A stretch of 64,000 nucleotides of DNA from Macrostomum lignano (taxonomy: Eukaryota): assembly GCA_002269645.1 (NCBI GenBank), contig NIVC01000736.1, forward strand, positions 62,001 to 126,000, read 5' to 3'. A program made the translations under genes and the position numbers. Positions 1 through 50,200 of the stretch are shown here, piece by piece. Under the pieces are notes generated by a model. It did not search any database and had not been told where the DNA came from. It saw only the letters and a program-made list of their open reading frames with translations. Positions within the stretch are counted from its first letter, which is position 1; each line of letters opens with the position of its first letter.

Positions 1-950
1 CGCGGACTTCGTGGGATAGCGATAAGTCCGATCTCAGTCAGAGAGGACGGCCGCCGCCGCATAAAACTCGGAGCCGCGCAGCCAGCCCCAGCCGTGAGAC
101 GGAGGGGACACAAAAGAGGCTGAGGCCAAACTCGATTGAATGTCCGGGCCCACGCGGATAGGCATTTGGAAAGTCCTCTCCCAAGAAGGAATTTTATCGG
201 AAATTTGCGCTAGAATTCCCTTCATTCTAGGAGTTTCCATCGCTCAAAGTCCATTTCTCTTCCCGCTCGGCTCCGATGCTGAGCTGCCGCTGTCCCTGGG
301 TAAGAGGAAGGCTGGGCGTCATTAATTAAAAGAGGGAGCCGAGGCTCACGGCCGCTTTGAATCAGTTCTGTCATTCAGGGCACGTGGCAGCGACAGGGCC
401 GAGTTCCCATGGCCGAGCAGAGCCAGGGTCAGCCCGGATCATCGGTCAAGTCTTGAACCCGATCGGTGGCTCGGAGCTTGGATCTCGAATAACCGTCAGT
501 ACAGCAGCTTGAAGCATTAACCCCCGGATTGCTTAATCGACATTTGTTTATAACAAAAATGGGACGCAGTAAAACAAAACTCCACCGCCACGGGACCGAA
601 TATTTGGACTTTTGCGCGACGATTGGAGTTGGGAGGCAGCCGGTCCTGCCGGTGTCCTCCTCGCGCACTTGCTTGCGGCGGTGCGGTTCGGATAAACAAA
701 CTCGCTTGGCGGCGTGAGAAACAGCCGCATCGCAACTTGCTGCCTTCAAGTGGGGCCGCAGAATGAAACACCACCCGATACCCCTCGGAATCTGGGATCC
801 CCATCTGCACCCGATTCCACCGCCCCGCACGCGTCCCCCACCATTTGTGACATCTTCGCGTTTCCGGATCTGCGCTTTTTATCACCTGTTTTTTGGTTAA
901 ACGATTAACTGTGTTTTTCATTAGCGAAAGGTTCCCTGTGTCCCCTGCGA

Positions 951-3328
951 CTGTGTCTGAGTGACTGTGTCTGAGTGACTGTCTGAGTGACTGTGTCTGA
1001 GTGACTGTGTCTGAGTGACTGTCTGAGTGACTGTGTCTAAGTGACTGTGTCTGAGTGACTGTCTGAGTGACTGCGGCTGAGTGACTGTGTCTGAGTGACT
1101 GTATGAGTAACTGTGTTTGAGTGACTGCGGCTGAGTGACTGTGTCTGAGTGACTGTCTGAGTGACTGCGTCTGAGTGACTGTGTCTGAGTGACTGTCTGA
1201 GTGACTGCGGCTGAGTGACTGTGTCTGAGTGACTGTCTGAGTAACTGTGTTTGAGTGACTGTCTGAGTGACTGTGTCTGAGTGACTGTCTGAGTGACTGT
1301 GTCTGAGTGACTGCGGCTGAGTGACTGTGTCTGAGTGACTGTGTCTGAGTGACTGTGTTTGAGTGACTGCGGCTGAGTGACTGTGTCTGAGTGACTGTCT
1401 GAGTAACTGTGTTTGAGTGACTGCGGCTGAGTGACTGTGTCTGAGTGACTGTCTGAGTAACTGTGTTTGAGTGACTGCGGCTGAGTGACTGTGTCTGAGT
1501 GACTGTGTCTGAGTGACTGTGGCTGAGTGATTGTGTCTGAGTGATTGTGTCTGAGTGACTGTCTGAGTGACTGTGTTTGAGTGACTGCGTCTGAGTGACT
1601 GTGTCTGAGTGACTGTCTGAGTAACTGTGTTTGAGTGACTGCGGCTGAGTGACTGTGTCTGAGTGACTGTCTGAGTAACTGTGTTTGAGTGACTGCGGCT
1701 GAGTGACTGTGTCTGAGTGACTGTGTCTGAGTGACTGTGGCTGAGTGATTGTGTCTGAGTGATTGTGTCTGAGTGACTGTCTGAGTGACTGTGTTTGAGT
1801 GACTGCGGCTGAGTGACTGTGTCTGAGTGACTGTCTGAGTGACTGTGTTTGAGTGACTGCGGCTGAGTGACTGTGTTTGAGTGACTGCGGCTGAGTGACT
1901 GTCTGAGTGACTGCGGCTGAGTGACTGTGTCTGAGTGACTGTGGCTGAGTGATTGTGTCTGAGTGACTGTCTGAGTGACTGTGTTTGAGTGACTGCGGCT
2001 GAGTGACTGTGTCTGAGTGACTGCGGCTGAGTGATTGTGTCTGAGTGACTGCGGCTGAGTGATTGTGTCTGAGTGACTGTCTGAGTGACTGTGTTTGAGT
2101 GACTGCGTCTGAGTGACTGTGTCTGAGTGACTGCGGCTGAGTGATTGTGTCTGAGTGACTGCGGCTGAGTGATTGTGTCTGAGTGACTGCGGCTGAGTGA
2201 TTGTGTCTGAGTGACTGTCTGAGTGACTGTGTTTGAGTGACTGCGGCTGAGTGACTGTGTCTGAGTGACTGCGGCTGAGTGACTGTGTCTGAGTGACTGC
2301 GGCTGAGTGATTGTGTCTGAGTGACTGTCTGAGTGACTGTGTTTGAGTGACTGCGGCTGAGTGACTGTGTCTGAGTGACTGCGGCTGAGTGATTGTGTCT
2401 GAGTGACTGTCTGAGTGACTGTTTTTGAGTGACTGCGGCTGAGTGACTGTGTCTGAGTGACTGTCTGAGTGACTGTCTGAGTGACTGTGGCTGAGTGACT
2501 ATGTCTGAGTGACTATCTGAGTGACTGTCTGAGTGACTGTCTGAGTGACTGTGGCTGAGTGACTGCCTGAGTGACTGTAGCTGAGTGCCTGTCTGAGTGA
2601 CTGTGGCTGAGTGACTATGTCTGAGTGACTATCTGAGTGACTGTCTGAGTCACTGTCTGAGTGACTGTGGCTGAGTGACTGTCTGAGTGACTGTCTGAGT
2701 GACTGTGTCTGAGTGACTATCTGAGTGACTGTCTGAGTGACTGTGTTTGAGTGACTGCGGCTGAGTGACTGTCTGAGTGACTGTAGCTGAGTGACTGTCT
2801 GAGTGACTGGCTGAGTGACTGTGTCTGAGTGACTGTCTGAGTGACTGTGGCTGAGTGACTGTGGCTGAGTGACTGTGTCTGAGTGACTGTGTCTGAGTGA
2901 CTGTGGCTGAGTGACTGCGGCTGAGTGACTGTGTCTGAATGACTGTGTCTGAGTGACTGTCTGAGTGACTGTCTGAGTGACTGTGGCTGAGTGACTATGT
3001 CTGAGTGACTATCTGAGTGACTGTCTGAGTGACTGTGTCTGAGTGACTGCGGCTGAGTGACTGTCTGAGTGACTGTGTTTGAGTGACTGCGGCTGAGTGA
3101 CTGTCTGAGTGACTGTGGCTGAGTGACTGTCTGAGTGACTGGCTGAGTGACTGTGTCTGAGTGACTGTCTGAGTGACTGTCTGAGTGACTGTGGCTGAGT
3201 GACTGTGTCTGAGTGACTGTGTCTGAGTGACTGTGGCTGAGTGACTGTCTGAGTGACTGTGGCTGAGTGACTGTGTCTGAATGACTGTGGCTGAGTGACT
3301 GTGGCTGAGTGAGACTGTGTCTGAGTGA
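951..3328. repeat. Minisatellite array, 10-14-bp units (GAGTGACTGT[GT]CT variants), ~2.4 kb
   Basis: Tandem repeat read directly; variant units (GCGGCT, GTGTTT, GATT) recur in larger blocks. ORF 2995..3354 is an artefact of it. Confidence 0.95.
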
Positions 3329-4176
3329 CCGTCTTCTTTCAATGCCTTTTCCATGAAGTCAAACCTGTCTCATTTACTTTACCACACAGCGAAGCAGCTT
3401 CCACTTCATCTTAATTACGATTCTCTGCCGTCCCGGAGCACCTGTAGAATTTTTTCCTTCTAAGTAAATATTTTTCCACAATTCGGGTTTCTCCTCCGAC
3501 CCGAGAGCTCTCCCCCCCCCCTGGCAGCCGGGGCTGGAGCGACAGCGCATCATTTTCAGACCAGCGGCTATCAGCACCAGCTGGACACCCAGGGCGGGGG
3601 CGGGCAGGCCTGGGGATCCGCTGTGCCAGCAGCTTTCTGCGCAGCTGCACCGGGCGCAGAGGATGCAGCAAGCAAAAAATATTTTGGGGGGACACATTTC
3701 CACCGTTGCGCGCTCTGGAACTCTGGGTGGATACTAAAATGGCTTTCTTCTGCTTTCTCTGCAGCACGCAGTTGCTGCTGCTGCTGCTGCTGCGGCTTTA
3801 CGACGCTGTTTATTTGAAAGTTCGAGGCGCCGCGCGCACTCTTTGGGGTTGTTTGGGGAATCGCAAGGCCTGCCAACTCAGCTTGAAGTCCAGACGCTTC
3901 GGCTCGCTGATCCAGACGCGAAACACTCCCGATTTGCGCTCACATTTCTCTTCTTTTCGTTAAACTTTAAGCAAGTTTTATTGAAAACCCGGGCAGTTTT
4001 AACCTAGAATGGCACGGAGCGGAAGCCGTGTGAAGATCGTTGAAGCGAAAGATACATGAAACTCACAGCATTGCCCAGTCTATTGTAGCCCCTGTTAAGG
4101 CCTTTCCTCTCTTAGCTGCTGCTCATTCTGGGTGTTAAAGTGCTGGGGACTAAATAAGGGTGAGCACACTTTTGCA

Positions 4177-4399
<223 letters not shown>

Positions 4400-5324: not shown

Positions 5325-8300
5325 GTACTCCTACCAGTTCGGCTGGATGAACAACAAAAAGTTCATCAAGCAGCTGCAGAAGGACAACATTGACTTGGCC
5401 ATCCTGCAGAGCGAAATCGGCTCCGTGAATACGAAGCGGAGAAAAAAGTCGTGAGTGATTTCTTACCGCTGCTGTTGCTTGAGCTGAAATCCATTGTATT
5501 AGCTAATCCATGATTGGCTAGATTAGCAATCCATTGTATTAGCTAATCGATGATTGGCTAGATTAGCAATCCATTGTATTAGCTAATCCATGATTGGCTA
5601 GATTAGCAATCCATTGTATTAGCTAATCCATGATTGGCTAGATTAGCGATCTATTGTATTAGCTAATCCATGGTTGGCTAGATTAGCAATCCATTGTATT
5701 AGCTAATCCATGATTGGCTAGATTAGCAATCCATTGTATTAGCTAATCCATGATTGGCTAGATTAGCAATCCATTGTATTAGCAAATCCATGATTGGCTA
5801 GATTAGCAATCCATTGTATTAGCAAATCCATGATTGGCTAGATTAGCAATCCATTGTATTAGCAAATCCATGATTGGCTAGATTAGCAATCCATTGTATT
5901 AGCAAATCCATGATTGGCTAGATTAGCAATCCATTGTATTAGCTAATCGATGATTGGCTAGATTAGCAATCCAATGTATTAGCTAATCCATGATTGGCTA
6001 GATTAGCAATCCATTGTATTAGCAATCCATGATTGGCTAGATTAGCAATCCATTGTATTAGCAAATCCATGATTGGCTAGATTAGCAATCCATTGTATTA
6101 GCAAATCCATGATTGGCTAGATTAGCAATCCATTGTATTAGCTAATCCATGATTGGCTAGATTAGCAATCCATTGTATTAGCAAATCCATGATTGGCTAG
6201 ATTAGCAATCCATTGTATTAGCAAATCCATGATTGGCTAGATTAGCAATCCATTGTATTAGCTAATCCATGATTGGCTAGATTAGCAATCCATTGTATTA
6301 GCAAATCCATGATTGGCTAGATTAGCAATCCATTGTATTAGCAAATCCATGGTTGGCTAGATTAGCAATCCAATGTATTAGCTAATCCATGATTGGCTAG
6401 ATTAGCAATCCATTGTATTAGCTAATCCATGATTGGCTAGATTAGCAATCCATTGTATTAGCAAATCCATGGTTGGCTAGATTAGCAATCCAATTGCGAA
6501 CAGGCAGCAGCTGCAGGCCCAATATCCCTCATCGATTTGAGGCGGCGTCCCGGCGGGCCAGTTGACAGACAGCCGGTTTGCAGTTTAAAAATAATGGCAC
6601 AGAAACTGAAAGCCTTCAAGACAAGGGGAGATCCGTCTCGGATCCCCGGGGACAGAGAATGATCGACTGGAGCAGATTATGAGTCGCAGGGGCCGGCCTT
6701 TCAGATCCCGGCAGCGGGATAGAGGCGCTGGTAATTAGCTTAGTCTGCAGCGGCAATCGACAGCTAATCTTCTTAAAGCTCAAACTTGTCCCAAAACAAA
6801 CTTTCCCCCTCCATGTGCAGCCCAGTAATCCCCGGAATCGATATCCCTTGGCGTGTTGCAGAGGGCAGCCGGTTTTGGTTACAGAAAAATATTGTATTTT
6901 AGATTTCTAACATATTGCACTACTGACAGTAGGAAAAAGCTAAATTTTCTATGCGTGTTTTGCAAATGGATAGAGTTTGAAGGATGAAATTGTTTATTCA
7001 TTTTTCCTTTGACTCTTTAATGCTTCTGTTGCGTATTCTGCAGCACGCGTAAAATTGGGTTTGTTAATCATGAATGAATTGGATAAAATGGATTGCTAGT
7101 CTAGCCAAAGCACTGAATTAATATAGAAACAGAATGGATTGCTAATCTAGCCAATCATGAATGAAGGAATAGAATTGAATTGCTAATCTAGCTAATCAGT
7201 TATGAATTGGATAAAATGGATTGCTAATCTAGCCAACGTCAAGGATGAATAAAAGAAGTGGATTGCTAAAATGGTGTACTTTTAAAACACATTATTCGGC
7301 TACTGAGCGGATCGGCCGTCTACCAATTGATCGAATTTCGAGCTCGTATGGCAAGGCAGCTAAAAATATCCCATAGCAACCGGAAGGCGGCAGTTCCGCC
7401 CAGCTTTTTAATTCGCGATCGAAGCCTCCCCTGCCGGAGTTTCCCCTGCCAAACCTTTTGTTTTAATCCTGGATTTTCCGTCCGCTCGCCTTTGTGCTCA
7501 AAAGAGGAATCGGCTGCTTTTTTATCGGCCTTTGTGCCCGGGACAATGCGTGTGCGATAATAATAATCATAATCCAATACAATAAACTCACTTTCACTCT
7601 CCCTATCTGAGCAGTGACCTCACAGCTGCTTGTGCTTTTTATTGCCTTTCCTTCATCACTTCTTCTGAATATAAAGGGCGGTGACTGTGAGCAGCTCACT
7701 TGCCGAGCTCGCTTTCGCAAAGGGATCAATCAATGATTGGGGAGCGGGGAAAACCCGCCTCTTTGTCCTCCCTGCCCCCTCCTCCGCAGTAGCAGAATGA
7801 ACAAAAATGCCCCCCCCCACCGCGTCTGTTGCGCGCAAACTGGAAAATTCCATGCCAAAAACAGCCGCCGCCGCCCCAGACTCCGCCTCCGGAGCTCCCT
7901 GCTCGAGTCCTCGTTTCCGTGACAACGCCGCCTCGTCTTCGCTACCTTCGCTGCTAGCTGGGAATTCCCAGGAATCCAGGGGCACACAGAGAGGCCGCCT
8001 CTCCAGCTCCCCCCCTCCCGGAGCCTTTGATGCCTTGATGGAGACGCGAGCTGTCACAGAGCGGCCGCACTTAGTCTGAGTTCGAGACTCTCCCGAGAGC
8101 CGGGGGAACCCAGCGGTAATTAGTCTGGGAAGCTGGCCTGACCTTAGTTCTGCTCCCTCAGGCCTTTCTCTCAGTTCGGCACAATCTCGAGCTAAAAGAG
8201 GACAAATCTGTGTCTGAGTTAAAAAATTGACCACTGAATGTCGCAATTGAGGGATTTAAATACCAAATCCTTTCGATCGAAAGCACCAAATAAAGCGACT

Positions 8301-11300
8301 TGGATTCAAAAGCTATCGAAGCGGTTTAACAAACAACCTATTTTAATCAACAAGCAGCTCATGGTCCCTTCCCTGCTCAAGCCTCCGTCTGGAACTCCTC
8401 AGCTGAGCATCCAATCTCACTGGGCCAATGGGAGCAGGCATTCCGGACAACTCGCTCCCTGCCTTCCCTGATGCTCTCCGCGGGTTGGCACCGGCTGAGG
8501 CTGAAAGGGGGGGGGGGTTGGGAATTGCTTGACCCGGATCAAAAGAGTCCGACTACTGAGCAGTGCGGCCTTCCTAAGACTCGGCCTTATCTGAGCTGAC
8601 AAACTTGGACCCCGAAGGATTTAGAAGCATCGAAAAGCAGGAGAAGCAGACAGAAGCAGACAGAAGCAGACAGAAGCAGACAGAAGCAGACAGAAGCAGA
8701 CAGAAGCAGACAGAAGCAGACAGAAGCAGACAGAAGCAGACAGAAGCAGACAGAAGCAGACAGAAGCAGACAGAAGCAGACAGAAGCAGACAGAAGCAGA
8801 CAGAAGCAGACAGAAGCAGACAGAAGCAGACAGAAGCAGACAGAAGCAGACAGAAGCAGACAGAAGCAGACAGAAGCAGACAGAAGCAGACAGAAGCAGA
8901 CAGAAGCAGACAGAAGCAGACAGAAGCAGACAGAAGCAGACAGAAGCAGACAGAAGCAGACAGAAGCAGACAGAAGCAGACAGAAGCAGACAGAAGCAGA
9001 CAGAAGCAGACAGAAGCAGACAGAAGCAGACAGAAGCAGACAGAAGCAGACAGAAGCAGACAGAAGCAGACAGAAGCAGACAGAAGCAGACAGAAGCAGA
9101 CAGAAGCAGACAGAAGCAGACAGAAGCAGACAGAAGCAGACAGAAGCAGACAGAAGCAGACAGAAGCAGACAGAAGCAGACAGAAGCAGACAGAAGCAGA
9201 CAGAAGCAGACAGAAGCAGACAGAAGCAGACAGAAGCAGACAGAAGCAGACAGAAGCAGACAGAAGCAGTCAAGCTGCCTCGGTTTGGGCGCAGCCGCTA
9301 TCGCCACCGGTCATCCGGTGACGAATCCGATGAATGCGACGACGGAGGAGCCCTTGGCGGCGGGCCACCAGCCAGGCCGCCGCTGCTGTTTGCCGCCGCC
9401 TCCTCCTCGTCAGCTTCATCGTCGCTGCTCAGCCTCCTGTCGCCGACGTTGCCGTCCACGCCTCGGTCGGCGGCGGCAGCTGCAACGGCGGCGGCAAATG
9501 GCGACGCCAGCGGAAGCCTCAGGCGCTCCTCCCGCCACCGGCATTTCAGATGGAAGGAGCGGCTGCTGTACGCAATCCGGTCCAACGTAGTGCAGATCAT
9601 CCTGTGCGCCTTCGTGCTCATCGACGCCGTCATTGTGATCGCCGAGATCATCCTGGAGATCAAGGCCATCACCAGTAAGTAGCCAGGACTATAGGTGCCG
9701 TCTGTGGGGTGTCAGGATATGCTGAGTGCCTGACTGTGGGCTGTCAGGATTTGCTCAGTGCCTGACTGTGGGCTGTCAGGATATGCTGAGTGCCTGGCTG
9801 TGGGCTGTCAGGATTTGCTCAGTGCCTGACTGTGGGCTGTCAGGATATGCTGAGTGCCTGGCTGTGGGCTGTCAGGATTTGCTCAGTGCCTGACTGTGGG
9901 CTGTCAGGATATGCTGAGTGCCTGGCTGTGGGCTGTCAGGATTTGCTCAGTGCCTGACTGTGGGCTGTCAGGATATGCTGAGTGCCTGCCTGTGGGCTGT
10001 CAGGATTTGCTCAGTGCCTGGCTGTGGGCTGTCAGGATTTGCTCAGTGCCTGGCTGTGGGCTGTCAGGATTTGCTCAGTGCCTGGCTGTGGGCTGTCAGG
10101 ATTTGCTCAGTGCCTGGCTGTGGGCTGTCAGGATTTGCTCAGTGCCTGACTGTGGGCTGTCAGGATTTGCTCAGTGCCTGGCTGTGGGCTGTCAGGATTT
10201 GCTCAGTGCCTGGCTGTGGGCTGTCAGGATTTGCTCAGTGCCTGGCTGTGGGCTGTCAGGATTTGCTCAGTGCCTGGCTGTGGGCTGTCAGGATTTGCTC
10301 AGTGCCTGGCTGTGGGCTGTCAGGATTTGCTCAGTGCCTGGCTGTGGGCTGTCAGGATTTGCTCAGTGCCTGGCTGTGGGCTGTCAGGATTTGCTCAGTG
10401 CCTGGCTGTGGGCTGTCAGGATTTGCTCAGTGCCTGGCTGTGGGCTGTCAGGATTTGCTCAGTGCCTGGCTGTGGGCTGTCAGGATATGCTGGGTGGGGT
10501 TTATTCTCCGATTGAAGCCTCCATATTTATTCATCCATCGTTCCTGGAGTCCGATGCATCCATCCGGGATGCACACCGCATCCAGGTTTAATCTGCATGG
10601 GTTTGTGGAAATCTTTGGAATTTGAGATTTACCTGAAAGGGGCTTAGGAAGATGATGGAAGAGGCTGCAAGGACGGAATATTCGAAAATGGCCGAATAGC
10701 GGAGAATTTTGTTGATGATGGAAACTGCTTACGCAGTTTAGGGATTTTCTAAAGGGTTCTCGGAATCTCAGGAATTTAAGCTCAATGCTGTTGATTTTAG
10801 TTATCCCAAAGGATTAGTCAGGGATGAAGACATGTAGAAAACAGATGAGAGTTAGCAGAGCTGAAGCTCGAGTCCATGTGGCTGTGTAACCAATGGATTG
10901 TGGCACCGAGCACTGCATCCCGATACGAGCTATCAGTTGATGCAAAAAACCCTATGGTAGGAGACTCCAATCGGAAATGGAGCTGCTATCCTAGGGATCC
11001 ACCCAAAGCGAGTCGGTCACTTTGTCTCGATGCTATTTCGCTGGGTCGGTTTCACAACTCCAAACTTCTCAAGCTCAAAATTGCCTGAATCCGAAACACC
11101 GGCGCCTCACAAATTTGCGAATTGCAGGCGAGAAGCAGGAGCTCGAGGACGCCTTCGTGCAGACTGCCGGATTCGTCAATCGAACATTCGCCAAGCAGCT
11201 CGGCGAGCGAGGCCTCCTGCTGCCGGCCTTCAGTCCGGAGCTGACGTCGTCGCCTCAGTTTGCCGAGCGCCTGGTGACCAACATGGCCGACGTGCTCCTG

Positions 11301-14300: not shown

Positions 14301-17300
14301 AATTGTTATTAAAATTTCGATTTCAGATCGTCGACGCAGTGGTGATCATGATCTCATTTGTGGCGGACATCGTCTTCGTGAAGCTGGAGTCCACGGAAGT
14401 GTCAGTCATGGTCCTGTTCCTGCTCTGGCGAATTGTTCGCGTCATCAATGGTGCGTGACGGGTTCTGTGCAGGATGCTCGCTGCTGGGAGAGGAAAAGCC
14501 AGACATCTGGGTTCTCCCGACACTTGCAGAGCACGGACAATAGCAGGAGTTCGTATTCAGCACTTCTGAGCCCCCCCCCAGCTGCCAATATGGCTATAGA
14601 TGCTAGGCCCCCATCAGTCTCACATTTCTTCTCCTGCCCCAGCAGAGGATCTCCATATTCGCATTATCAGTAAGGCCATTAATAATAGTGCTTACATAAA
14701 AGTTCAGCGACTTTCTAATCCCACAAGTCGAAATCACTCGCAGATGCAGAAGTGCGCAGATATTAACAAGCTTTAGTAAAAGTTATTAAAATGAATTTAA
14801 ATGTAAACTAGCGGGTTTGTAACTGAGTACCTCATCAGAAATTAATCTTCTGAATTAGATTTCCCTATGCACTGCAATTTCGGCATTCCAGGCCAACGCC
14901 CTCAATTATTTACAAAAGGGTCTCTGTCTACGTGTACACTCGCACTACCTCTGTACACTTGATTAAATTGACCAGTATGAGAAGGGCTGAAGTTGGTTAT
15001 TCGACCTGTTTATTGTCTGCCTATACAGTTAAACTGATAAATCTGCATGCATAGAGGGTTACCGCAGTATTCATCTCTATCCGTGGAATCAGTTGACTTT
15101 ATTTTTTTCACGGCAGAAGAGATTGGAAATTATTAGCGAGTGATTAAAAACAAGCCAGTAATGAGTCTTGGCTGAGGCTGCCCTTTTTTTACGAGTTACT
15201 CGACTGCACGGGTCGGCACAGATCGAAGGATCGGGGACTTTTCATCGGGGAATGGACTAGTCGATGGAGAAGTAGAAGGCCCCCATCCCGTACCTTTCCG
15301 ATGCGGCGGGGGGGGGAACTGCTCGGCAACGGATAGAGAAGAAACGCAACGAGACCCACCCGTGGGCAAATGCGAGCAGTCATCTGTGCCAGCCAGTTAT
15401 CGACATTTTCTGGCCTTTGCCTCTGCCTCTCAGTTGAAGCCGCATCGGGCATGTCCTCAGCTCGCCTGTACCTCGTTTGCACGCTTGAATTCAGAAAATT
15501 TCACCGGTGGGCTGGGGAGCTGCGGCCCGACTACAAATTGCATCTCAGCCCAATTTGCCCCAGCCAATCTCTGGCACTTCCTTTCTCCAGTGTCTCTCGA
15601 GGCTCGCATTCCATTCACGTTTCTTTTAGTCAGGGCCTGAGCGACTTTGGTGCACTATTCACTGAGCAGCATTTGAGATTGACAAGGCGAGTTAGAGCTA
15701 AACCATGATCTTACACCTTTAGTGGCCACACGGTGTTAACTGGGTCCTGCGTATCACACTGTGTCACAATAAAGTACACCCGCTGATATAGCATCAAATT
15801 GAATAAGTAATTCCCTGTCAGCTTTGTCTTGTATTGCCAGTCTCCTATAAATTCTGTGTTTAAAATTTCGAATACAAGAGAGCGAATTTACAATCTGTTT
15901 ATACCAGAACGAAACCTGTTTTTGTCGGCAGCAGGGCTGGCCATAGACTTCGGGCCCCCAAGCCCCGGCAGCAGGGCTGGCCATAGACTTCGGGCCCCCA
16001 AACCCCGGCAGCAGGGCTGGCCATAGACTTCGGGCCCCCAAGCCCCGGCAGCCCCGGCAGCAAGCCCCGGCCCGAAGTCTATGGGTTGGCCATAGACTTC
16101 GGGCCTTCAAATCCCGGCAGCAGGGCTGGCCATAGACTTCGGGCCTTCAAACCCCGGCAGCAGGGCTGGCTATAGACTTTGCGCCTTCAAACCCCGGCAG
16201 CAGGGCTGGCCATAGACTTCGGGCCCCCAAACCCCGGCAGCAGGGCTGGCCATAGACTTCGGGCCCCCAAACCCCGGCAGCAGGGCTGGCTATAGACTTC
16301 GGGCCCCAAACCCCGGCAGCAGGGCTGGCCATAGAATTCGGTCTCCCAAAACCCGGCAGCAGGGCTGGCCATAGACTTCGGGCCCCCAAGCCCCGGCAGC
16401 AGGGCTGGCCATAGACTTCGGGCCCCAAGCCCCGGCAGCAGGGCTGGCCATAGACTTCGGGCCCTCAAGCCCCCGTGTTAAAACAAAGCCGCAACACCGT
16501 CCGCAGGCCTGATGATGCACGAGAAGCAGCGTGGCGAGTTCAGAATCCAGCTGCAGAAGCGAGCCAGGCGAATGTCCGAGATGAAGTGTGACACCCTGGA
16601 GACGGAGCGCGACCTGCAGGAGGTGCCATAAAAGCAGGGGGAGTTTCAAAGTCAAATACTACTTAGGGCTGCCAGCTGCCTATTGACAGAAAGCACGAGC
16701 CGCACAGGGCAGGGAGCTCAGATTGGACTGAGGGGGGGGCAGAATGGCTGTCGCAACATGAGGCAGGAATTCTGTACCAGAAATGCGTCTGCAAACAGCG
16801 CGCCCCGAATTCCCCGGGCAAACAGGCTGGGGTAATTAACTACTCAGTCTCCCTATGCCGCCCCTAGTAGCAAAAGTTGAGAAGCGGAATGATCTCGCGG
16901 CCTGGCAGCAGTAGGGGATTAGCCGGGGCGGGACAGGCGGCCGGGGATCAATTAGGGCCCGAGAGTCGAGGCGGCGCGCATGATGGATAACTCGAGCAGA
17001 GAAGCAGCTGCCAGCAAGAGCGCCAACCACAATCTCGCTGTTCACTTTCAGAAGCACATCCTGTTCCTGGAGGAGCTCTGCAGAGAACTGGGCGGCGGGG
17101 AGGAGCAGATTGCCAACTGCAAGCCGCGGTGTGAGTTGCCTCACCTGAGCTGTGAATTCTATTTTTTAACGTCAATCTCCAGCGTGTCAGAAGTGAGGAA
17201 ACTGAGATGATGGGGAGACTGAGATGGGGAGCGAATGCGTGTTAGGGATATGTGGAAATGGAGATCCACAGCCAGAGTGAAAAGAAGAAGAGGGGCTGCA

Positions 17301-22782: not shown

Positions 22783-23096
22783 ATGAAGACCCAGCTACTC
22801 GTGCTGCTAGTTCTGCTTGTCCTGCTCGCGGTTCTCGGTGAGGTTCGCGGGAATATTGAGCCAAATTTTATTTAATTACATCCTTGGCTTGCTGGTTGGC
22901 AAGACTATTATTAATCAATCGCATACAAAATTCACATACAGGCTGCTCAATCGCGTGCGTTAAAGTGGAGTGCGACAAGAAAGGCAGTATCTGTAAGGAC
23001 AGTGCAGCCTCGTATTGCTGCTCAAAGCGCTGCTCCGGGAAAAGAGTGTTACTGGCTTCTGGCGGGGTGCTTGGCTATTGGAAGAAGTGCGAGTAA
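22783..23096 (+). CDS. Secreted inhibitor-cystine-knot (knottin, conotoxin-like) peptide precursor, 69 aa; exons 22783-22837 and 22942-23096
   Basis: Spliced product MKTQLLVLLVLLVLLAVLG|CSIACVKVECDKKGSICKDSAASYCCSKRCSGKRVLLASGGVLGYWKKCE*; 104-nt phase-1 intron gtgagg...catacag; signal peptide plus C-x6-C-x7-CC-x3-C-x18-C. Confidence 0.85.
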
Positions 23097-23359
23097 TGAC
23101 TGACGGCAACTGTGAGCACAGAATACTGTGACTGTGAGAGTCTTCGGCTGTGGCTCAAGACAGACATTTTGATTGACCAAACTGCGTAATTCCTGTTGCT
23201 TGTTACCTGAATTGGTCTGCATTTCATGCCGTGCCCTGATTGCTTTGGAGCACTTTGACTACTGAGTTAAATACAGCGGCCCTAACTTTATCTATCGTTA
23301 GCCATATACACTTCACTGTGCCTTCAAGGGTGTTAACTACACAAGCAGACTAACTCGTC

Positions 23360-26300
23360 TAAGTAACTAGCTAGCTAGCAGGGCGCGTCAGATGGCGCGC
23401 CGCAGAGCCTGGGAACGAACAAAGTCCGCTCCGTTGGCAGTGTCGGGCGCCCCAGCGTCGCACAACAGGCAGTCCACGAATCGAGGGTTCGGGCCTGACC
23501 CCGCCTGAAGGGACCCTGCAAGGTGAGCAGCAGGACGTCCTGAACAGGTTGGGGGCAGTAGCCCTCGGCCCGGATCACGTGGTTTGCCAGTTGAAGTCGC
23601 CGCCGGCGCATGATGGTGGACGGGCGCTGCAGTTTGGCCCGATCGTACAGGGCCTCGGTCCCGACGCTCTCGTCAGCTCGAAAGGCCGCACGGAGCAGCC
23701 CTGAGTGCGCCGAGTCCAGCTGCCGCTCTAGCGTATCCGTCAGCGTCCACGTCTCGGCGTTGTAGAGCAGGACGGTTTCAACCACCGCCTGCCACAGCCG
23801 AGCCCTCTGGCGGTCGGGCAGCACTTCGGATTGGAGGACGGCTCGGATCGAACGAAAGGCCGCCCAGGCAAGTCCTCTGCGCCGCCGGAGGTCCTCTTCC
23901 ACGTGAGGCACCAGACCGCCGAGGTAGGTGAACCGCTGGCAGCGTGCGAGCCTGGTCGTCTGCCCGTCTGCGACGCGGCACGTCAGGTCCGCTGGGATGT
24001 CGGCCGGCACAGTCAGCACCTCGGTCTTCAGCGTGTTGACAACCAGTCCGACGCTCGATGCCACCTCGACCAGCCTGTCGATCTAGCGCTGGGCGCCTTC
24101 AACGGACGAGGACAGGAGGGCGAGGTCGTCGGCGTAGCCAAGCACGCTTAGGCGCTTTCCGCCGTGGCGGCGACCGATGCGTCTGCGCAGCAGGAAGCGG
24201 TCATTAGCCGAGGGGAGTGCGGTCCGAAGCACCCAGTCCAGCAGCAGCACGAAGAGGAACGGCACAAGCGTGTCGCCATGCAGAACTCCTGATGAAGTGT
24301 CGAACAGGTCAGACAGGCCGTCCGCCGTCACCACAGCAGCTCGAGTATCGCAATACAGCGACATGATAGCGTCGATTAACTGCTGCGGGACCAGGTAGGC
24401 TTCTTCTTCTCCCATTCGGGCGCGCTCGGGCCAGGGCCCATGGCACCGGGCTTCAGACGGCGCCCGCCTTCGGAGGAAGTTCAGCACCGCGACGTAGTTC
24501 TCGAAAACTGCCGCGGGCTCCGGGCTTGCCCCCCAGAGGCGGCAGCGGTGTGGAGTCAGGGCGGGGCAGGAGATCAGCAGATGGGCCGCCGTCTCCTCTC
24601 CATCACCGCAGAAGCGGCAGGTGGGGGCCACGTCAACGCCGATGGCGGCCTGGAAGCCCCGCAGGGCCGGGCAGCGGTCGGCGCCGGCTGGCAAATCAGG
24701 CAAGGTGCCAGGCCAGCGAGCTCGTTCTCGCCGCCTCGGTGGCCGCCGCGTTGTAGGTCTGGTGCCAGCGGGCGAGGCAGTGGCGGCGGACGGCAGCCTG
24801 CGTGGCAGCCAACGGAACGGGCGCGGCGCCTTGTGCCAGCGTGGAGCCTCGTTTGGCGATCTCGTCCAAGGCCTCGTTGCCGAGGATTCCCGCGTGGCCA
24901 GGCACCCACTGCAGGTGGACCGTGGTTCCCCGGGCCGCGAGGTCGGCGAGGCTGGCCCAGACGGCGTCGATCATGGTGGCGCCCGTCGACCCGGAGCCGG
25001 ACGCGAGCGTGGTAAGCGCGCTCAGGGAGTCAAAGCAGATGCGGACCGGCGACAGCTCTTCAGGGTCCGGGGCCGCGAGCACCCACCGAAGGTCTCAGCG
25101 ATGGCCACTAACTCGGCGAGGAAACTGGACGTCACATGGCCAGCAGCGACGCACGGCGTGGTGTTGGGCTCGACCAGGATACCGCTGCCGCCGTCCAGGA
25201 TGCCGTCATTCGCCGCTCCGTCGTTCCAGACCACGGTGCGGGCGGGCGGCAGGGCGGCGAGCGTCTGCTCCGCCGCGGCTCTCCGGGCCGGCAGGTCCCC
25301 CGCGAGGTCGGGGAGGCCAGCTGCAGCCCGAAGGTGACGGAGTCCAGGTCAGCCCAGGGAGGGTGTCGTCGGGACAGCGTAGACGGGCTCTTGCGGGGAG
25401 CCGCCCAGGCCCGCAGCGCTGCAAACGCTGGCCGCCAGCCGCGGGCGCTTTGGAGGCGGCAGCGCGGGCCGACGCTGGCCGCGCAGGCGCGAAGCGGGTT
25501 GTCGGGCGGCAGCCTGAGGGTGCGCTCGTGGAGGAGGTCAGCGTGCATCTCCGCGCGGACTGCCATCGGCGGCAGCCCAGCCTCGCGCTCCAGCACCTCC
25601 GACCTGATGTTCCGCGGACACCCGGTGATGATGCGGTGATGAAGGGACCAGGTAGGCTCGAAGGACGAAAGGGAGCGCGGCTCTCAGCACCGAGTCAAAA
25701 GCCTTTCGAAAGTAAGCGAAGACAATGATCAGCATAGACTGGCGGATGCGCGCCTCCTCGATGACACGGCGGAGTGCAAGGATCTGTGTCACTGTACCGC
25801 GTTGCGGCCGGAATCCATTCTGCTCGTACCGCAGGTACGGGTCTAGCACCGACTGCAGACGATCGAGCAGCAGCCGGTTGAAGAGCTTCGCGGTGCAGGA
25901 CATCAGCGAGATCCCGCGGTGGTCTTCTTTCCAGTGGGAGCGGCGTGTCCAGTGGGAGCGCAAAACTGGCAGGTAGCGGCGACGCGGGCGCGTTCACGAT
26001 GCCGGCGAAGAAGTCGTGCAGTTCATTCCTGCGCTCCTCCGGGGTGTCGCCGGCAGTTTCAGCGCCACGCGCATTTTGCGCCCCGTCAGAGTCCTGACGG
26101 CCGTCCACACTGGGCGGCTCTTCACGTCGGGGCCGGCTGCAGTGATGGACCTGACGGCGTCGTCGACAGCGGCCTGCTGCCGCTCGTCTAGAAGCAAGGA
26201 CTATCCTAGTGATCCTTGTCTAGAAGGCGCTCAAACGCGTCTTCAGCGTCGCCTGTGGGCCGCCAGTTTCTGTGGAGTCGCTCGATGTTGAGCCGCGCCT

Positions 26301-26600
26301 GCCTGATGGTCGGGTCGCTCTGCCAGACAGGCAGTGATTTCTGCGCTGGCCGCATCAGCGGGACCGTCTGGTCCGCAGCGGCTGTAACGGCGGTGCTGAT
26401 GTCGGAATACTCCGCCTCGCGCTGGTCTCCAAGCGTGGCGACGAAGGCACCCGCGAATTGACGCTTCACGCAGGTGTCCAACAGTGCGCGATAGTAGTGC
26501 CGTGGCCGCTGCTTTGGTGGTCGGTAGAGCTGGTCGCGGAGCCGCAAGTCGCAGATCAGGAGGAGTCTGTGGTCTGACCGGGTCTACGAAGTTTGCCTTG
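23360..26600 (-). mobile_element. RTE-clade non-LTR retrotransposon (endonuclease end + RT), decayed, with nested insertions
   Basis: SDHRLL (end of APE), HRGISLMSCTAKLFNRLLLDRL, EQNGFRPQRG, FRKAFDSV, SGVLHGDTLVPFLF, LGYADDLALLS, FTYLGG; frameshifts and deletions; short (CTAG)-type 3' tail near 23360-23375. Confidence 0.9.
24402..25643 (-). mobile_element. 5'-truncated RNase H-containing LINE (I-group-like) inserted in the RTE
   Basis: 15-bp TSD GGGACCAGGTAGGCT at 24387-24401 and 25644-25658; RNase H motifs WNDGAA, AELVAI, CFDSLSAL, LQWVPGHAGILGNEALD; terminal CRFC..ETAAHLLISC knuckle; (GAA)n tail. Confidence 0.9.
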
Positions 26601-33992: not shown

Positions 33993-36105
33993 ATTACACC
34001 ATTTTACCCTCGATTTTGAACGGGGAGAACTTCGAGACTGACAAACTCCTCTTCAATATTGACACTCTATGGTCGGGCACTCAAAATCTACAATCAATAT
34101 CGACAGATCAAGCTTCAATTTTGACAAACTCTGGTTCAATTTTGACAATGCACGTTTAGTCAACTTCCCCTGGGAGAATTCGTTAACAAATTAATCCAAT
34201 GAAAGCCTGAACGGGGCTGAAGTGAGCTGTGCAAAATCAGCTTATTCTGACTTTGCTTTTTGGATCTACAAGTATTGATAAAATTTATTTTTCTCCATCG
34301 TTTACACACACAGACTAAAATCGCCTGACTGGTTGGGCTCCAAAGTCTGATTCTATTTTGACAGAGTTGCTTCAAAACTGACACTCTATGGTTTGTGTAC
34401 GCAAAAAGTCCGCTTCATTTTTGACAACTCCGAATCAATATCGAACAGTTTACAATCGATTTTGACTAAGACATTTTTTGAAATAGATTTTGACAATTTT
34501 TACTAAGATTTCTCTCTTGAGTAGGGGGGGGGGGATACTTGGCTATTTGGGAGAAGGGGTACTGGCTGCATGTATCTACGAGTACATGTATAGGAATCTT
34601 TCTATCCAGGTATGCTTGCTATCTGGGTGGATGTTTGCTACCTGGATGATGCTTGCTATCTGCAAGATGCTTGCTAGCTGGGTGGATGCTTGCCATCTGG
34701 GTAGATGCTTCTATCTGGGTGGATGCTTGCTATCTGGGTGGATGCTTGCTATCTGGGTGGATGCTTGCTATCTGGGTGGATGCTTGCTATCTGGGTGGAT
34801 GCTTGCTATCTGGGTGGATGCTTGCTATCTGGGTGGATGCTTGCTATCTGGGTGGATGCTTGCTATCTGGGTGGATGCTTGCTATCTGGGTGGATGCTTG
34901 CTATCTGGGTGGATGCTTGCTATCTGGGTGGATGCTTGCTATCTGGGTGGATGTTTGCTACCTGGATGATGCTTGCTATCTGCAAGATGCTTGCTATCTG
35001 GGTGGATGCTTGCTATCTGGGTGGATGCTTGCTATCTGGGTGGATGCTTGCTATCTGGGTGGATGTTTGCTACCTGGATGATGCTTGCTATCTGCAAGAT
35101 GCTTGCTATCTGGGTGGATGCTTGCTATCTGGGTGGATGCTTGCTATCTGGGTGGATGCTTGCTATCTGGGTGGATGTTTGCTACCTGGATGGATGCTTG
35201 CTATCTGGGTGGATGTTTGCTACCTGGATGATGCTTGCTATCTGCAAGATGCTTGCTATCTGGGTAGATGCTTCTATCTGGGTGGATGCTTGCTATCTGG
35301 GTGGATGCTTGCTATCTGGGTGGATGCTTGCTATCTGGGTGGATGCTTGCTATCTGGGTGGATGCTTGCTATCTGGGTGGATGTTTGCTACCTGGATGAT
35401 GCTTGCTATCTGCAAGATGCTTGCTATCTGGGTGGATGCTTGCTATCTGGGTGGATGCTTGCTATCTGGGTGGATGCTTGCTATCTGGGTGGATGCTTGC
35501 TATCTGGGTGGATGCTTGCTATCTGGGTGGATGCTTGCTGTCTTGGGATGTTAAATGACCGGCCTTTTGCTAGAGTCCCTTGAGAGAGCAGGGACTCTAG
35601 CAAGCATCCCTGGATAGAAAGATTCATCTTAGTCAAAATCGATTGTAAACTGTTCGATGTTGATTCGGAGTTGTCAAAAATGAAGCGGACTTTTTGCGTA
35701 CACAAACCATAGAGTTTCAGTTTTGAAGCAACTCTGTCAGGATGGAATCAGACTTTGGAGCCCAACCAGTCAAGCTATTTTAGTCTGTGTGTGTAAAGGA
35801 TAGAGAAAAATAAATTTTATCAATACTTGTAGATCCAAAAATCAAAGTCAGAATAAGCTGATTTTGCACAGCTCACTTCAGCCCCGTTCGGGCTTTCATT
35901 GGATTAATTTGTTAACGAATTCTCCCAGGAGAAGTTGACTAGACGTGCATTGTCAAAATTGAACCAGAGTTTGTCAAAATTGAGGCTTGATCTGTCGATA
36001 TTGATGGTGGATTTTGAGTGCCCGACCATAGAGTGTCAGTATTGAGGAGGAGTTTGTCGGTTTCGAGGTTCTCCTTGTTCGGAGTCGAGGGTAAAATGGT
36101 GTAAT
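33993..36105. mobile_element. Long-TIR foldback DNA element: 479-bp arms (33993-34471, 35627-36105) around a satellite core
   Basis: Arms align without gaps, 26 mismatches; TA flanks CACC...GGTG (Tc1/mariner-like, inferred). An inner 26-bp inverted repeat (34594-34619 / 35600-35625) brackets the satellite. Confidence 0.85.
34610..35540. repeat. 19-bp minisatellite (GGATGCTTGCTATCTGGGT) inside the foldback element
   Basis: Tandem repeat; explains ORFs 34490-35583. Confidence 0.95.
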
Positions 36106-46617: not shown

Positions 46618-47282
46618 TATATGCACAATATCTAACCAATCTAGATAGGTAATAAAGTGACTAAATGCTACAAAACCAATTAACCAAGTACCAAAAGTTA
46701 TATCATATTATTTGTCACCTTACTAAAATATTTTAGTCAATAATTCTATTGTTTGTTACATTAAATTTTCATTGAATTCAATTAAATTGAAGGGTTAAAG
46801 TTTTAAATATCAATATTTAGTTTTATAATACTATTGAGTATTATATTAGCAAATTAAGTAAAAGTAAATTAAAAAACTTGCTTCTGGCAAAACTTAGTCT
46901 GATCACAAATTAGAAGAATTTTTTTCAACAAAATAGGAAAATAGATCTGAATATACTTTATTTATCAAAGCAAAGCAAAATATTATATTCATATATACTG
47001 TTTATTGAATTAGTGCTGCTAAATATTTTATAATTAATCATAATTCATCATTTTAGCTGATAATATAATAAATTTGTGTTGTTCATGTGAATATATTAAT
47101 TATATTCACATGAGGTTGTTTTGTTTAAGTAGTGTTGTGTTGGCCTTGTTGAAAATGTTATTGTACAAAAGCAAAGTAAAGTGGAAACAACATGCAGCTT
47201 ACTTGACTCCAATTTCTTCTCCAATGGTCAGTTGATAAACCATAAAGTCCGCTTTCCAGCTCGCCGCTGTCCCAGTCACGCC

Positions 47283-50200
47283 ATGAGTCTGCAGCGCAAG
47301 AAGGACACCGCGCCCAGTCAGCGGTTCTTCGAGCACCCGGAGGTGATCGCCGAGTTCGATACGGTCCGCACCTGGCTCACCCGCAATCACAAGAAACTCA
47401 TGCAGACGGAGCCGCCAACCAACAAGAGCCTGGCCTCCATCTGCTACCAGCTGCTCTGCTTCCAGGAGGAGCAGGTCCGCCGCCAGGCAAAGTCGCCGCC
47501 GTATCCGACCCGCCTGCCCGGCCGGCTGTTCCTGGACTTCCAGCCGGGCGGCGCGCTCTGCCAGATGTTCCTGACTGTGTTCCGCTTCAAAGGCGAGCAG
47601 GGCTGGCGCAGGCTGGACTTTCACAAGGCCTCCTGGCTGGAGAAGAATCTGGAAATGCTGGCGCTGATGCGCAAGGAGCTGCTGGACTCCAAGCTGTGGT
47701 CGCTGCCGCGGGTGCACATCAAATCAGACGTGCCCGAGGACATCCGGACTCGCCTGCTGGACATTTGCCAGCGACACGGCCTCGAGCTGGCTGACACCGA
47801 GGACGCCTGCACACACCTGGTGTACGGCCCGGCCAGCGCTGCCCCGGCCGCCGCCGCCCAGCAGCTGCTTGAGGACAAGGTCACCCCGGCCTTCAAGGAG
47901 GGCAAGCACTCGGTGGTGCATTGGAAGGGCACCGTGTCCAGCTATGATGTGTTTTACACTAGCCCCGCTGAGCTGGAGGTTGAGGTAATCAGCATGGGAT
48001 AAATCCCAGCTCAGGCGGATTCTGGGTAAAGAGATTCGCCCATCTCATATGAGATTTCTTTCATCTCATATGAGATTTCCTCTCTATCTGCGATTCGTTC
48101 TTTATGCAAGGACTTGAGATTCCTTCTCCATTTCTGAATGAGATTTCCTCTCCGTTCCGACTATGAGATTCCCTCTCTACCCAGAATAAGAGATTCCCTC
48201 TCCATTCCAAATATGAGATTCCCTCTCCACCCAGAATAAGAGATTCCCTCTCCACCCAGAATATGAGATTCCCTCTCCACCCAGAATATGAGATTCCCTC
48301 TCCACCCAGAATATGAGATTCCCTCTCCATTCCGAATATGAGATTCCCTCTCCATTCCGAATATGAGATTCCCTCTCCACCCAGAATATGAGATTCCCTC
48401 TCCACCCAGAATATGATATTCCCTCTCCACCCAGAATACGAGATTCCCTCTCCATCCCGCATATGAGATTCCCTCTCCATTCTGAACAATATGAGATTTT
48501 CTCTCCATCCAGTGTATGAGATTCTCTCTACCTGAGACACTGAGATTCCCTCTGCCTGAGACACTGAGATTCCCTCTGCCTGAGACACTAGAGTTCCTCT
48601 GCCTGAGACACTAGATTCCCTCTGCCTCAGACACTAAGATCCCTCTGCCTGAGACACTGAGATTCCCTCTGCCTGAGACACTAGATTCCCTCTGCCTGAG
48701 AAACTAGATTCCCTCTGCCTGAGACACTAGATTCCCTCTGTCTGAGACACTAGATTCCCTCTGCCTAAGACACTAGATTCCCTCTGCCTAAGACACTAGA
48801 TTCCCTCTGCCTAAGACACTAGATTCCCTCTGCCTGAGACACTAGATTCCCTCTGCCTGAGACACTAGATCCCTCTGCCTGAGACACTAGATTCCCTCTG
48901 CCTGAGACACTAGATTCCCTCTGCCTGAGACACTAGATTCCCTCTGCCTGAGACACTAGATTCCCTCTGCCTGAGACACTAGATTCCCTCTGCCTGAGAC
49001 ACTAGATCCCTCTGCCTGAGACACTAGATTCACTCTGCCTAAGACACTAGATTTCCTCCGCCTGAGACACTAGATTCCCTCTGCCTAAGACACTAGATTC
49101 CCTCTGCCTGAGACACTAGATTCCCTCTGCCTGAGACACTAGATTCCCTAATCAATCCCACTCCTTCGCCAGGTGACCCGCTGCGTCCCGGACGGTCCCT
49201 GGGAGCTGGACGCCGCTTACCTGTTGACGCTGGACGAGCAGTGCGAGTTCCCGCCGGAGGAGGACTTCCTGGTGGAGTACCAGGAGTTCGCCCGGCGCAC
49301 CGGCCGCAAGCCAGCGGCGCCGCCCCGCTACTACTCGGTTTCCGAGTTCGTGGAGCTCAAGCGGGAGAAGAAAATTCAGAAGCGAAAGCGATCGCCTTCG
49401 CCGCCAGCCTCGTCGACCGGCGCCCAGGCGGTGGCCGCATCGACGCCTTCGTCGAATTCCCGTTCCGGCGTTGGCGGAACCGCCGGTTCCGGCCGGAAGT
49501 CGTCGGCTGCCAACGTCTCGGCGGCGGCGGCAGCTTCCGGCGGCGGCGCTGGCGGCAAGAAGGCGCGCCGGGAGACGGGCGCCTCCGCTGCTGCTTCTGC
49601 GACAGGCAGCCAGCCCTCCGGCGAGCCCATGGACGCGGAAGCGCCCGGCGGCGGGTCCGGCCGCGCTGGCGGCGGCGCCGAGGAGGACGCGGACGCCACA
49701 GCCGCTACGGTCGGCGGCACGGAGGGCGGCGGTGGCGGCAAAGTCGAAGACGGAGAGGATGAGCACGGGCAGGTGAGGTCACACTACTGGTAGTAGTGCA
49801 GACAGCCTGTGAGATTAATTTCCGATCTGTTGCTTACCTGGCAGAGGCAACATGAAGCATTTATTGGGCCTCTTTCACAAGCTCGAAATTTCAAATTTCT
49901 GAGGACACTCGGTCTGCAACAAACAACTGCCGACACAATCTCAGAAATAAACCCCGGTCGTAAGCTAAACCCCAGCCCTAACCTAAACCCCAGCCCCAAC
50001 CTAAACCCCAGCCCTAACCTAAACCCCAGCCCTAACCTAAACTTCACCCTAACCTAAACCCCAGCCCTAACCTAAACCCTAGCCATTTTAGCATTTCTAC
50101 TACTGTTTAGACAGTAAATAGTGTGTTTTGCTAATGTATAGAGGAATTTTGCTGTGGATAATCAACTGCAAAAAGCAATGTATCACAATTGTATTGCATT

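Follow-up and report, generated by a model that had tools for sequence, protein, structure and literature searches.

[quoted passage not shown] Joined in frame, the exons encode a precursor of 69 aa (MKTQLLVLLVLLVLLAVLGCSIACVKVECDKKGSICKDSAASYCCSKRCSGKRVLLASGGVLGYWKKCE) in which a hydrophobic leader is followed by a small Cys-rich domain; the coordinates are collected in Table 1. When the gene structure was derived anew, it reproduced the in-frame join across the intron that had been proposed for this locus, and the spliced protein is identical to entries in GenBank (see below). The splice sites are canonical GT..AG (donor TCG/GTGAGG and acceptor ACATACAG/G, the slash marking the junction), there are stops in frame 5′ of the ATG, and the GC contents of exons 1 and 2 are 0.56 and 0.53, respectively, against 0.37 in the intron. 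The intron interrupts the gene in phase 1 at the boundary between leader and mature peptide, an arrangement that is common among secreted-peptide genes. That the exon for the leader had been missed by the track of open reading frames (ORFs), as the original prediction stated, is correct; the ORF of exon 1 runs to 30 aa, which is below the length cut-off of the track.

Table 1. Features of the peptide gene, in window coordinates
Feature	Position	Strand	Description
Exon 1	22783..22837	+	55 nt; start ATG at 22783, hydrophobic leader MKTQLLVLLVLLVLLAVL and first base of Gly19; ends in phase 1; predicted secretory signal peptide
Phase-1 intron	22838..22941	+	104 nt; GTGAGG...ACAG; AT-rich, GC 0.37
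Exon 2	22942..23096	+	155 nt including TAA; entire mature Cys-rich peptide, G19/C20 to E69
N-terminal extra pair C20-x3-C24 (CSIAC)	22944..22958	+	Candidate cleavage sites between G19 and C20 and between A23 and C24
Six-Cys core C29-x6-C36-x7-C44C45-x3-C49-x18-C68	22971..23090	+	Framework compatible with an inhibitor cystine knot (ICK)
Last loop, 18 residues	23034..23087	+	SGKRVLLASGGVLGYWKK; predicted beta-hairpin, with the tip VLLASGGVLGYW between GKR and KK
AATACA hexamer	23270..23275	+	Weak poly(A)-signal-like hexamer, the sole one within the 700 nt searched 3′ of the stop

The leader consists of an n-region with K2 and a 14-residue L/V core (L5 to L18; mean Kyte-Doolittle value of 3.77 over residues 5 to 18). 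By rule of thumb it has the basic n-region, the h-region of 7 to 15 residues, and the small residues at -3 and -1 that mark a signal peptide, and the -3/-1 rule (again a rule of thumb) is satisfied at both V-L-G/C and S-I-A/C. From these features we infer that the leader is cut off as a signal peptide and that the peptide is secreted. Counting G19 to V25 (GCSIACV) as well would lengthen the same hydrophobic stretch to 21 residues (L5 to V25), and it might then serve as an uncleaved type II signal anchor, making the product a small membrane protein that displays its Cys-rich domain on the cell surface. We regard this as quite improbable, in that the aliphatic core spans just 14 residues, which is the length of a signal peptide, and is followed by small G, S, and A residues of the sort that are typical of a cleavage region.

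Cysteines occupy positions 20, 24, 29, 36, 44, 45, 49, and 68 of the precursor (spacings of 3, 4, 6, 7, 0, 3, and 18). A cut after G19 would leave all eight, an even number, whereas a cut after A23, where the c-region is more canonical, would leave seven and with them an unpaired Cys, either as a free thiol or in a dimer; the Cys count bears out the original prediction on both points. Depending on the cut, the mature peptide would have 46 to 50 residues, with a net charge (K+R-D-E) of +6 and a pI of ca. 9.0 to 9.2. The C-C-CC-C-C domain, its charge of about +6, the length of the last loop, and the absence of an acidic propeptide from the 69-aa precursor had all been described previously, and each was confirmed from the sequence. 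By direct reading, the last loop contains 12 uncharged residues in a row (VLLASGGVLGYW), mostly hydrophobic or aromatic, flanked by G-K-R on one side and K-K on the other.

G-K-R is a classical amidation and cleavage motif, and its presence together with several dibasic pairs raises the question of whether the precursor is instead processed in the manner of a prohormone or neuropeptide, with cuts at KR 47-48, GKR 51-53, and KK 31-32 and 66-67 and with Gly51 as the amide donor. The products of such processing would be Cys-cross-linked fragments of 2 to 15 residues, unlike known flatworm neuropeptides. Moreover, the precursor lacks both repeated peptide copies and acidic spacers, and dibasic sites within disulfide-locked domains would commonly go unprocessed. 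A prohormone of this kind is, in our view, very improbable.

Evidence that the gene is real

The protein turned out to be public already. PAA46843.1 and PAA64343.1 (hypothetical proteins BOX15_Mlig004682g1 and BOX15_Mlig004682g3 of M. lignano) are the same protein residue for residue, and PAA85542.1 (BOX15_Mlig004682g2) is identical at 68 of the 69 residues, the exception being V10G. At all three loci in GCA_002269645.1 (L001 to L003), the gene spans 314 nt, which is the two-exon span found here. The original description of the gene as unannotated is thus true only of the length-filtered ORF track; the gene model itself is on record as a hypothetical protein, and what is new is the structural and functional hypothesis.

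The GenBank annotation of M. lignano represents the “coregenes” part of a transcriptome assembled with genome guidance, for which RNA-seq data were assembled with StringTie, TACO, and TBONE and combined with de novo assembly, ORFs being called by TransDecoder; the “coregenes” filter drops noncoding and repeat-overlapping transcripts (PMC5730564). Since this annotation was built solely from RNA-seq-derived transcripts, a spliced mRNA of the peptide gene is already implied. Whether a spliced transcript exists, on which the original prediction had made itself depend, is in this way answered in favor of the gene, albeit indirectly.

We also asked how often such an arrangement would arise by chance. 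Across all six frames, a relaxed ICK pattern (C3-7C3-8CC1-5C4-20C) has a single match in the 64-kb window, which is the peptide gene, compared with 0.065 occurrences per window in block shuffles. A spliceable leader exon upstream of the Cys-rich ORF (an ATG followed by a basic N terminus and ≥12 hydrophobic core residues, with a GT donor and an AG acceptor in compatible phase) was obtained in 4 of 3,000 shuffles of the upstream 400 nt and at none of 3,411 control positions elsewhere in the window. Combined, these rates amount to ca. 1e-4 events per 64-kb window, or about one event per 760-Mb genome. As roughly one chance occurrence is thereby allowed genome-wide, the statistics alone are not decisive; the independent evidence is.

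That one expected event, the shortness of the ORF, and surroundings rich in retroelements and satellites are what can be said for a locus without function, that is, a transcribed noncoding locus or spurious transcript whose 69-codon ORF happens to resemble a secreted Cys-rich peptide; in addition, the copies of the gene (described below) are too similar to show selection. Such an accident seems improbable to us. The model was retained by both TransDecoder and the “coregenes” filter, all four copies have an uninterrupted ORF in which the sole exon 2 change is synonymous, and the difference in GC content between exons and intron fits coding sequence. A search of the 64-kb window for noncoding RNAs from Rfam gave none. 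Given the GC contrast, the canonical splice sites, the upstream in-frame stops, the transcript-based annotation, and the low chance expectation, we conclude that this is a real, spliced gene for a leader peptide and a small cationic Cys-rich domain.

Copies of the gene and their surroundings

The gene region in the window is identical to those of L002 and L003 and differs from that of L001 at 4 of 314 nt. Two of these differences are intronic and one is a synonymous change in exon 2; the remaining one, T>G at L001 position 10029 (window position 22811), places V10G in the hydrophobic core of the leader in the g2 copy and is the only amino acid difference among the copies. The product of exon 2 has 100% protein identity across the three GenBank copies, and none of the four copies compared has a disrupted ORF. 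The flanks of the window copy (window positions 12838 to 37950) share 99.1 to 99.3% identity with L002 and L003 and 98.1% with L001, and the indels differ. The window copy may be a fourth copy, or it may stem from a different assembly of the polyploid genome. By this comparison the gene exists as three or four near-identical homeologous copies, a number that fits the hidden polyploidy described for M. lignano (PMC5704211). At a divergence of 4 in 314 nt at most, the copies differ too little for any selection signal to be read from comparing them.

Paralogues, which the original prediction had raised as a subject for searching, did not materialize: neither the window nor the three GenBank loci yielded any to tblastn with the leader and the mature peptide. 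At the GenBank loci there are no annotated genes within 10 kb upstream of the peptide gene, and the next gene downstream, 2.5 kb away in L002, encodes a protein of 594 to 596 aa without Pfam domains.

A degenerate non-LTR retroelement occupies positions 23375 to 26401 on the minus strand, starting ca. 280 nt 3′ of the stop of the peptide gene, and its ORF at 24083 to 24703 has weak Pfam matches to RVT_1 and zf-RVT. The segment from 23758 to 26401 is present in L001 and missing from L002 and L003, which indicates an insertion/deletion polymorphism between homeologous copies. Farther away on the plus strand, large exons at 47181 to 48002 and 50741 to 52903 belong to a SWI/SNF subunit of the SMARCC/BAF155-170 type, with SWIRM-assoc_2, Myb/SANT, SWIRM-assoc_3, and SWIRM-assoc_1 domains (E values down to 5e-47). 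A piggyBac-type transposase lies at 60303 to 62012 on the minus strand (DDE_Tnp_1_7, E = 1e-48); it is split into two ORFs, so this copy is probably broken.

Searches for relatives

A word-indexed search of 5.8e9 proteins returned the M. lignano cluster only, and an exhaustive phmmer search with the mature 50 aa against 1.84e9 (1.84 billion) representatives returned this cluster and two repeat artifacts. The latter were rejected as relatives, both being of low complexity: P0003 is a translated tandem repeat and P0004 is a bacterial repeat protein. Logan and RNA-seq sources are missing from the protein cluster, even where M. lignano is concerned, and for this reason absence from other Macrostomum species cannot be concluded from the databases searched. 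Sequence searches of the PDB gave no match at an E value of ≤10, and the JGI metagenome contigs contained no relative of the peptide. The same was true of viral contigs, which were included with the idea of a baculovirus ctl-like peptide in mind.

Pfam scans with the full precursor and with the mature 50-mer gave nothing significant at an E value of ≤10, and no tachystatin A/B, spider toxin, albumin I, or other knottin family of Pfam was listed at that threshold. With the 42-residue core, one sub-threshold match was obtained, to Conotoxin, which is an ICK family (PF02950; E = 0.26, 12.7 bits versus a cut-off of 25.1). It spans core residues 1 to 23 (window positions 22971 to 23039), i.e., the C-x6-C-x7-CC segment, and as a match driven by the Cys columns it is to be taken as a hint only. 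A Kazal reading of the spacing (x6, x7 ... x3, x18) was also considered and rejected; the 10-residue loop between Cys 3 and 4 is missing, and no Kazal family appeared in the Pfam scans.

By these searches the peptide is a lineage-restricted orphan with no detectable sequence family, and it follows that any knottin fold it adopts would be either convergent or diverged past recognition. Orphan status of this kind, with no homologue outside M. lignano among 1.84e9 representatives, is a typical trait of the fast-evolving reproductive genes of Macrostomum, and it invites the thought that the product, whether or not it is a knottin, has a reproductive or structural job, either as a prostate seminal-fluid peptide or as a component of shell-gland, adhesive, or rhabdite secretions. 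The existence of a single gene with homeologous copies, in place of a toxin-like expansion, would agree with this. Macrostomum reproduction-related genes are reported to evolve rapidly (PMC7336406), and in situ hybridization has revealed putative seminal fluid proteins in M. lignano (PMC5977470). Against a reproductive or structural role, the expression records searched contain no link to an organ, Mlig004682 is missing from the text supplements of PMC7336406 (which may be incomplete), and strong positive charge coupled to a hydrophobic hairpin tip is seen more typically in membrane-active effectors. On balance, we consider such a role somewhat unlikely.

Predicted fold

Loops a, b, c, and d of the core have 6, 7, 0, and 3 residues, all of which are typical of an ICK, whereas loop e has 18, beyond the 4 to 13 residues of the classical range (Pallaghy/Craik consensus). 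The ICK is defined by ca. 30 to 50 residues and three interwoven disulfides, with III-VI passing through the ring formed by I-IV and II-V (PMC5753296), and the peptide has the corresponding Cys order, C-C-CC-C-C, within a core of 41 to 50 aa. Loop b in particular lies within the 2 to 7 residues that are seen in 90% of knottins (PMC10138031).

AlphaFold2 (AF2) was run in single-sequence mode, there being no homologues for an alignment, on two constructs (C20 to E69 and V25 to E69). The best models had mean pLDDT values of 65.4 and 71.2 and pTM values of 0.29 and 0.40, respectively, and in each run the four remaining models had pLDDT values below 56. Both constructs yielded strands at residues 35 to 37 (I35 to K37, containing Cys II), ca. 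47/48 to 55, and ca. 61/64 to 68, again with low confidence. This layout, in which Cys II sits on a short strand and Cys V and VI on a long hairpin, would fit the sheet topology of an ICK, as far as models of such low confidence allow. When the models were compared with the PDB by Foldseek, a method that is weak on mini-proteins, no match had an E value of <1 and there was no knottin among the matches; a comparison with BFVD likewise gave no knottin.

The original prediction had taken the spacing as that of an ICK and had tied the peptide to known knottin families. Of the fold assignment, the Cys order, four of the five loop lengths, and the low-confidence AF2 layout speak in its support, and the 18-residue loop speaks against it. 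The tie to a family has in its favor the sub-threshold Conotoxin match; no Pfam model reached threshold, however, and neither the PDB sequence searches nor Foldseek pointed to a knottin. We therefore put forward an ICK-like fold tentatively, as a possibility that falls a little short of being probable.

The full eight-Cys order, C-C-C-C-CC-C-C, is not unique to the ICK and also fits other four-disulfide folds. It is the order of the WAP four-disulfide core (4-DSC), the center of which, C-x5-C-x5-CC-x3-C, resembles C-x6-C-x7-CC-x3-C in the present peptide, with CC-x3-C common to both, and a fold of that type could confer protease-inhibitor or some other binding activity. The Foldseek result is in keeping with a non-ICK fold, as is the finding that synthetic peptides of the mussel family CRP-I, which has an ICK-type array, initially took up non-knottin pairings, a result that the authors attributed to folding without disulfide isomerase (PMC10138031). 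The CRP-I example makes clear that a Cys array alone does not fix connectivity. Nevertheless, the first two spacings and the last (3, 4, and 18) depart strongly from those of WAP domains, PF00095 gave no match even at an E value of ≤10, and the strand layout predicted by AF2 appears to fit an ICK better. A non-ICK fold is accordingly, to our minds, unlikely. The peptide is best labeled a lineage-restricted, secreted, cationic, cystine-rich peptide that is probably knottin-like.

Discussion

In the present analysis, a hypothetical protein of M. lignano was traced to a two-exon gene whose product shares several features with the knottins: its length (41 to 50 aa), its C-C-CC-C-C order, loops of 6, 7, 0, and 3 residues, its basic character, its predicted secretion, and, at low confidence, its predicted sheet layout. 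It departs from them in having no profile match, an 18-residue last loop, an extra C-x3-C at the N terminus, and no Foldseek match. There is also a likeness to the O-superfamily conotoxins (framework VI/VII, PF02950), whose framework the first loops, C-x6-C-x7-CC-x3-C, resemble and which provided the only Pfam model to surface. However, the flatworm peptide scores far below the cut-off for that family and lacks both a propeptide and the superfamily signal sequence; its last loop has 18 residues instead of a few, and it comes from a nonvenomous flatworm. M. lignano is a diatom grazer and is not known to be a venomous predator.

Tachystatins, the cationic ICK antimicrobial peptides of horseshoe crabs, have ca. 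40 to 45 residues, six Cys, and a beta-hairpin with aromatic and basic residues. The flatworm peptide is likewise cationic, similar in size, and endowed with six core Cys and a (predicted) hairpin with aromatic and basic residues, although it has no tachystatin match in Pfam at an E value of ≤10. Tachystatin B is cited as an ICK antimicrobial peptide (AMP) in the study of CRP-I (PMC10138031).

A parallel case is that of CRP-I in Mytilus, a lineage-restricted C-C-CC-C-C family that was assigned to the knottin fold on the basis of its Cys array and AlphaFold models (PMC10138031). Both are lophotrochozoan, taxonomically restricted, and secreted (by prediction in our case), and both encode the whole mature peptide in the last exon; in both, a fold was proposed from the Cys array and AlphaFold before a function was known. 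The differences lie in the genes. The CRP-I genes form a large and hypervariable multigene family; they have four exons and encode a conserved propeptide and a last loop of 3 to 5 residues. The flatworm gene stands alone except for its homeologous copies, has two exons, and encodes no propeptide. One representative CRP-I peptide had no significant activity in functional assays, and according to the same authors the knottin fold has evolved by convergence in many phyla (PMC10138031).

How might such a peptide work? The leader would direct cotranslational secretion and be cleaved, after which oxidative folding would turn the peptide into a compact mini-protein locked by disulfides. Its six core Cys would pair I-IV, II-V, and III-VI in an ICK-like fold, and the N-terminal C-x3-C would either supply a fourth bridge or be partly lost with the signal peptide. 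The long last loop would stand out as a beta-hairpin, with Lys and Arg encircling its uncharged, hydrophobic tip (VLLASGGVLGYW). A greasy tip above a cationic collar would suit interfacial insertion into anionic membranes, in the manner of membrane-active host-defense peptides, or binding to a channel by way of the membrane, and it is because of this predicted hairpin that we propose an action on membranes or membrane proteins outside the cell, where the peptide would dock. Its likeliest role would be in host defense (as an antimicrobial) or as some other effector in a gland secretion.

The sequence and the transcript-based annotation establish a transcribed, spliced gene for a hydrophobic leader and a basic Cys-rich peptide, and whatever goes beyond this in the proposal is inferred. 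Taken as a whole, a secreted, probably knottin-like, cationic orphan effector peptide is the explanation that we tentatively prefer, while acknowledging that it could quite readily be wrong. The functional step, in which the peptide would be an effector directed at membranes or membrane proteins with host defense as the likeliest purpose, is possible but doubtful. As for the toxin, antimicrobial, or channel functions suggested in the original prediction, these are speculation. An effector role also has the following against it. Toxin and AMP families typically combine a conserved leader with a hypervariable mature part, and no multigene family of that description was found here. The full-text literature and supplements of the M. 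lignano papers searched contain no record of the tissue expression of Mlig004682.

In its most ambitious form, the proposal would make this the first ICK effector of a flatworm: a Macrostomum-restricted knottin of de novo or convergent origin, with a fourth, N-terminal disulfide and a membrane-inserting hairpin, acting as an AMP or as a channel ligand of the gating-modifier type. We think this unlikely in its entirety. The literature searched contained no description of a flatworm knottin, and if both the fold and the extracellular effector role held true, the Platyhelminthes would become a further phylum to have evolved cystine-knot mini-proteins independently, in this instance on a compact scaffold bearing an unusually long, membrane-seeking hairpin. 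Even then, it would be a sequence-orphan knottin with an unusual long loop and not a new kind of system. At present, the peptide is one among the many small, orphan, secreted, Cys-rich proteins of invertebrate genomes, and in practical terms the analysis contributes a functional hypothesis for what GenBank lists as a hypothetical protein. RNAi works in M. lignano. With this, and with the working transgenesis (PMC5730564) and in situ hybridization reported for the species, the function of the peptide is directly testable.

One further observation concerns Cys-rich translations in the window at large. A scan of the window for further Cys-rich ORFs gave only repeats and the Cys-rich tail of the piggyBac element. 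Tandem repeats are unusually dense in the window (949 to 3329, 4176 to 4397, 5488 to 6492, 8642 to 9269, 9695 to 10491, 15926 to 16473, 34612 to 35543, and 48138 to 49149), examples being units of 14 nt (177 copies), 40 nt (25 copies), 10 nt (63 perfect copies), 32 nt (25 copies), and 19 nt (50 copies). Several of these repeats yield long, spurious ORFs, some of which are Cys-rich on translation.
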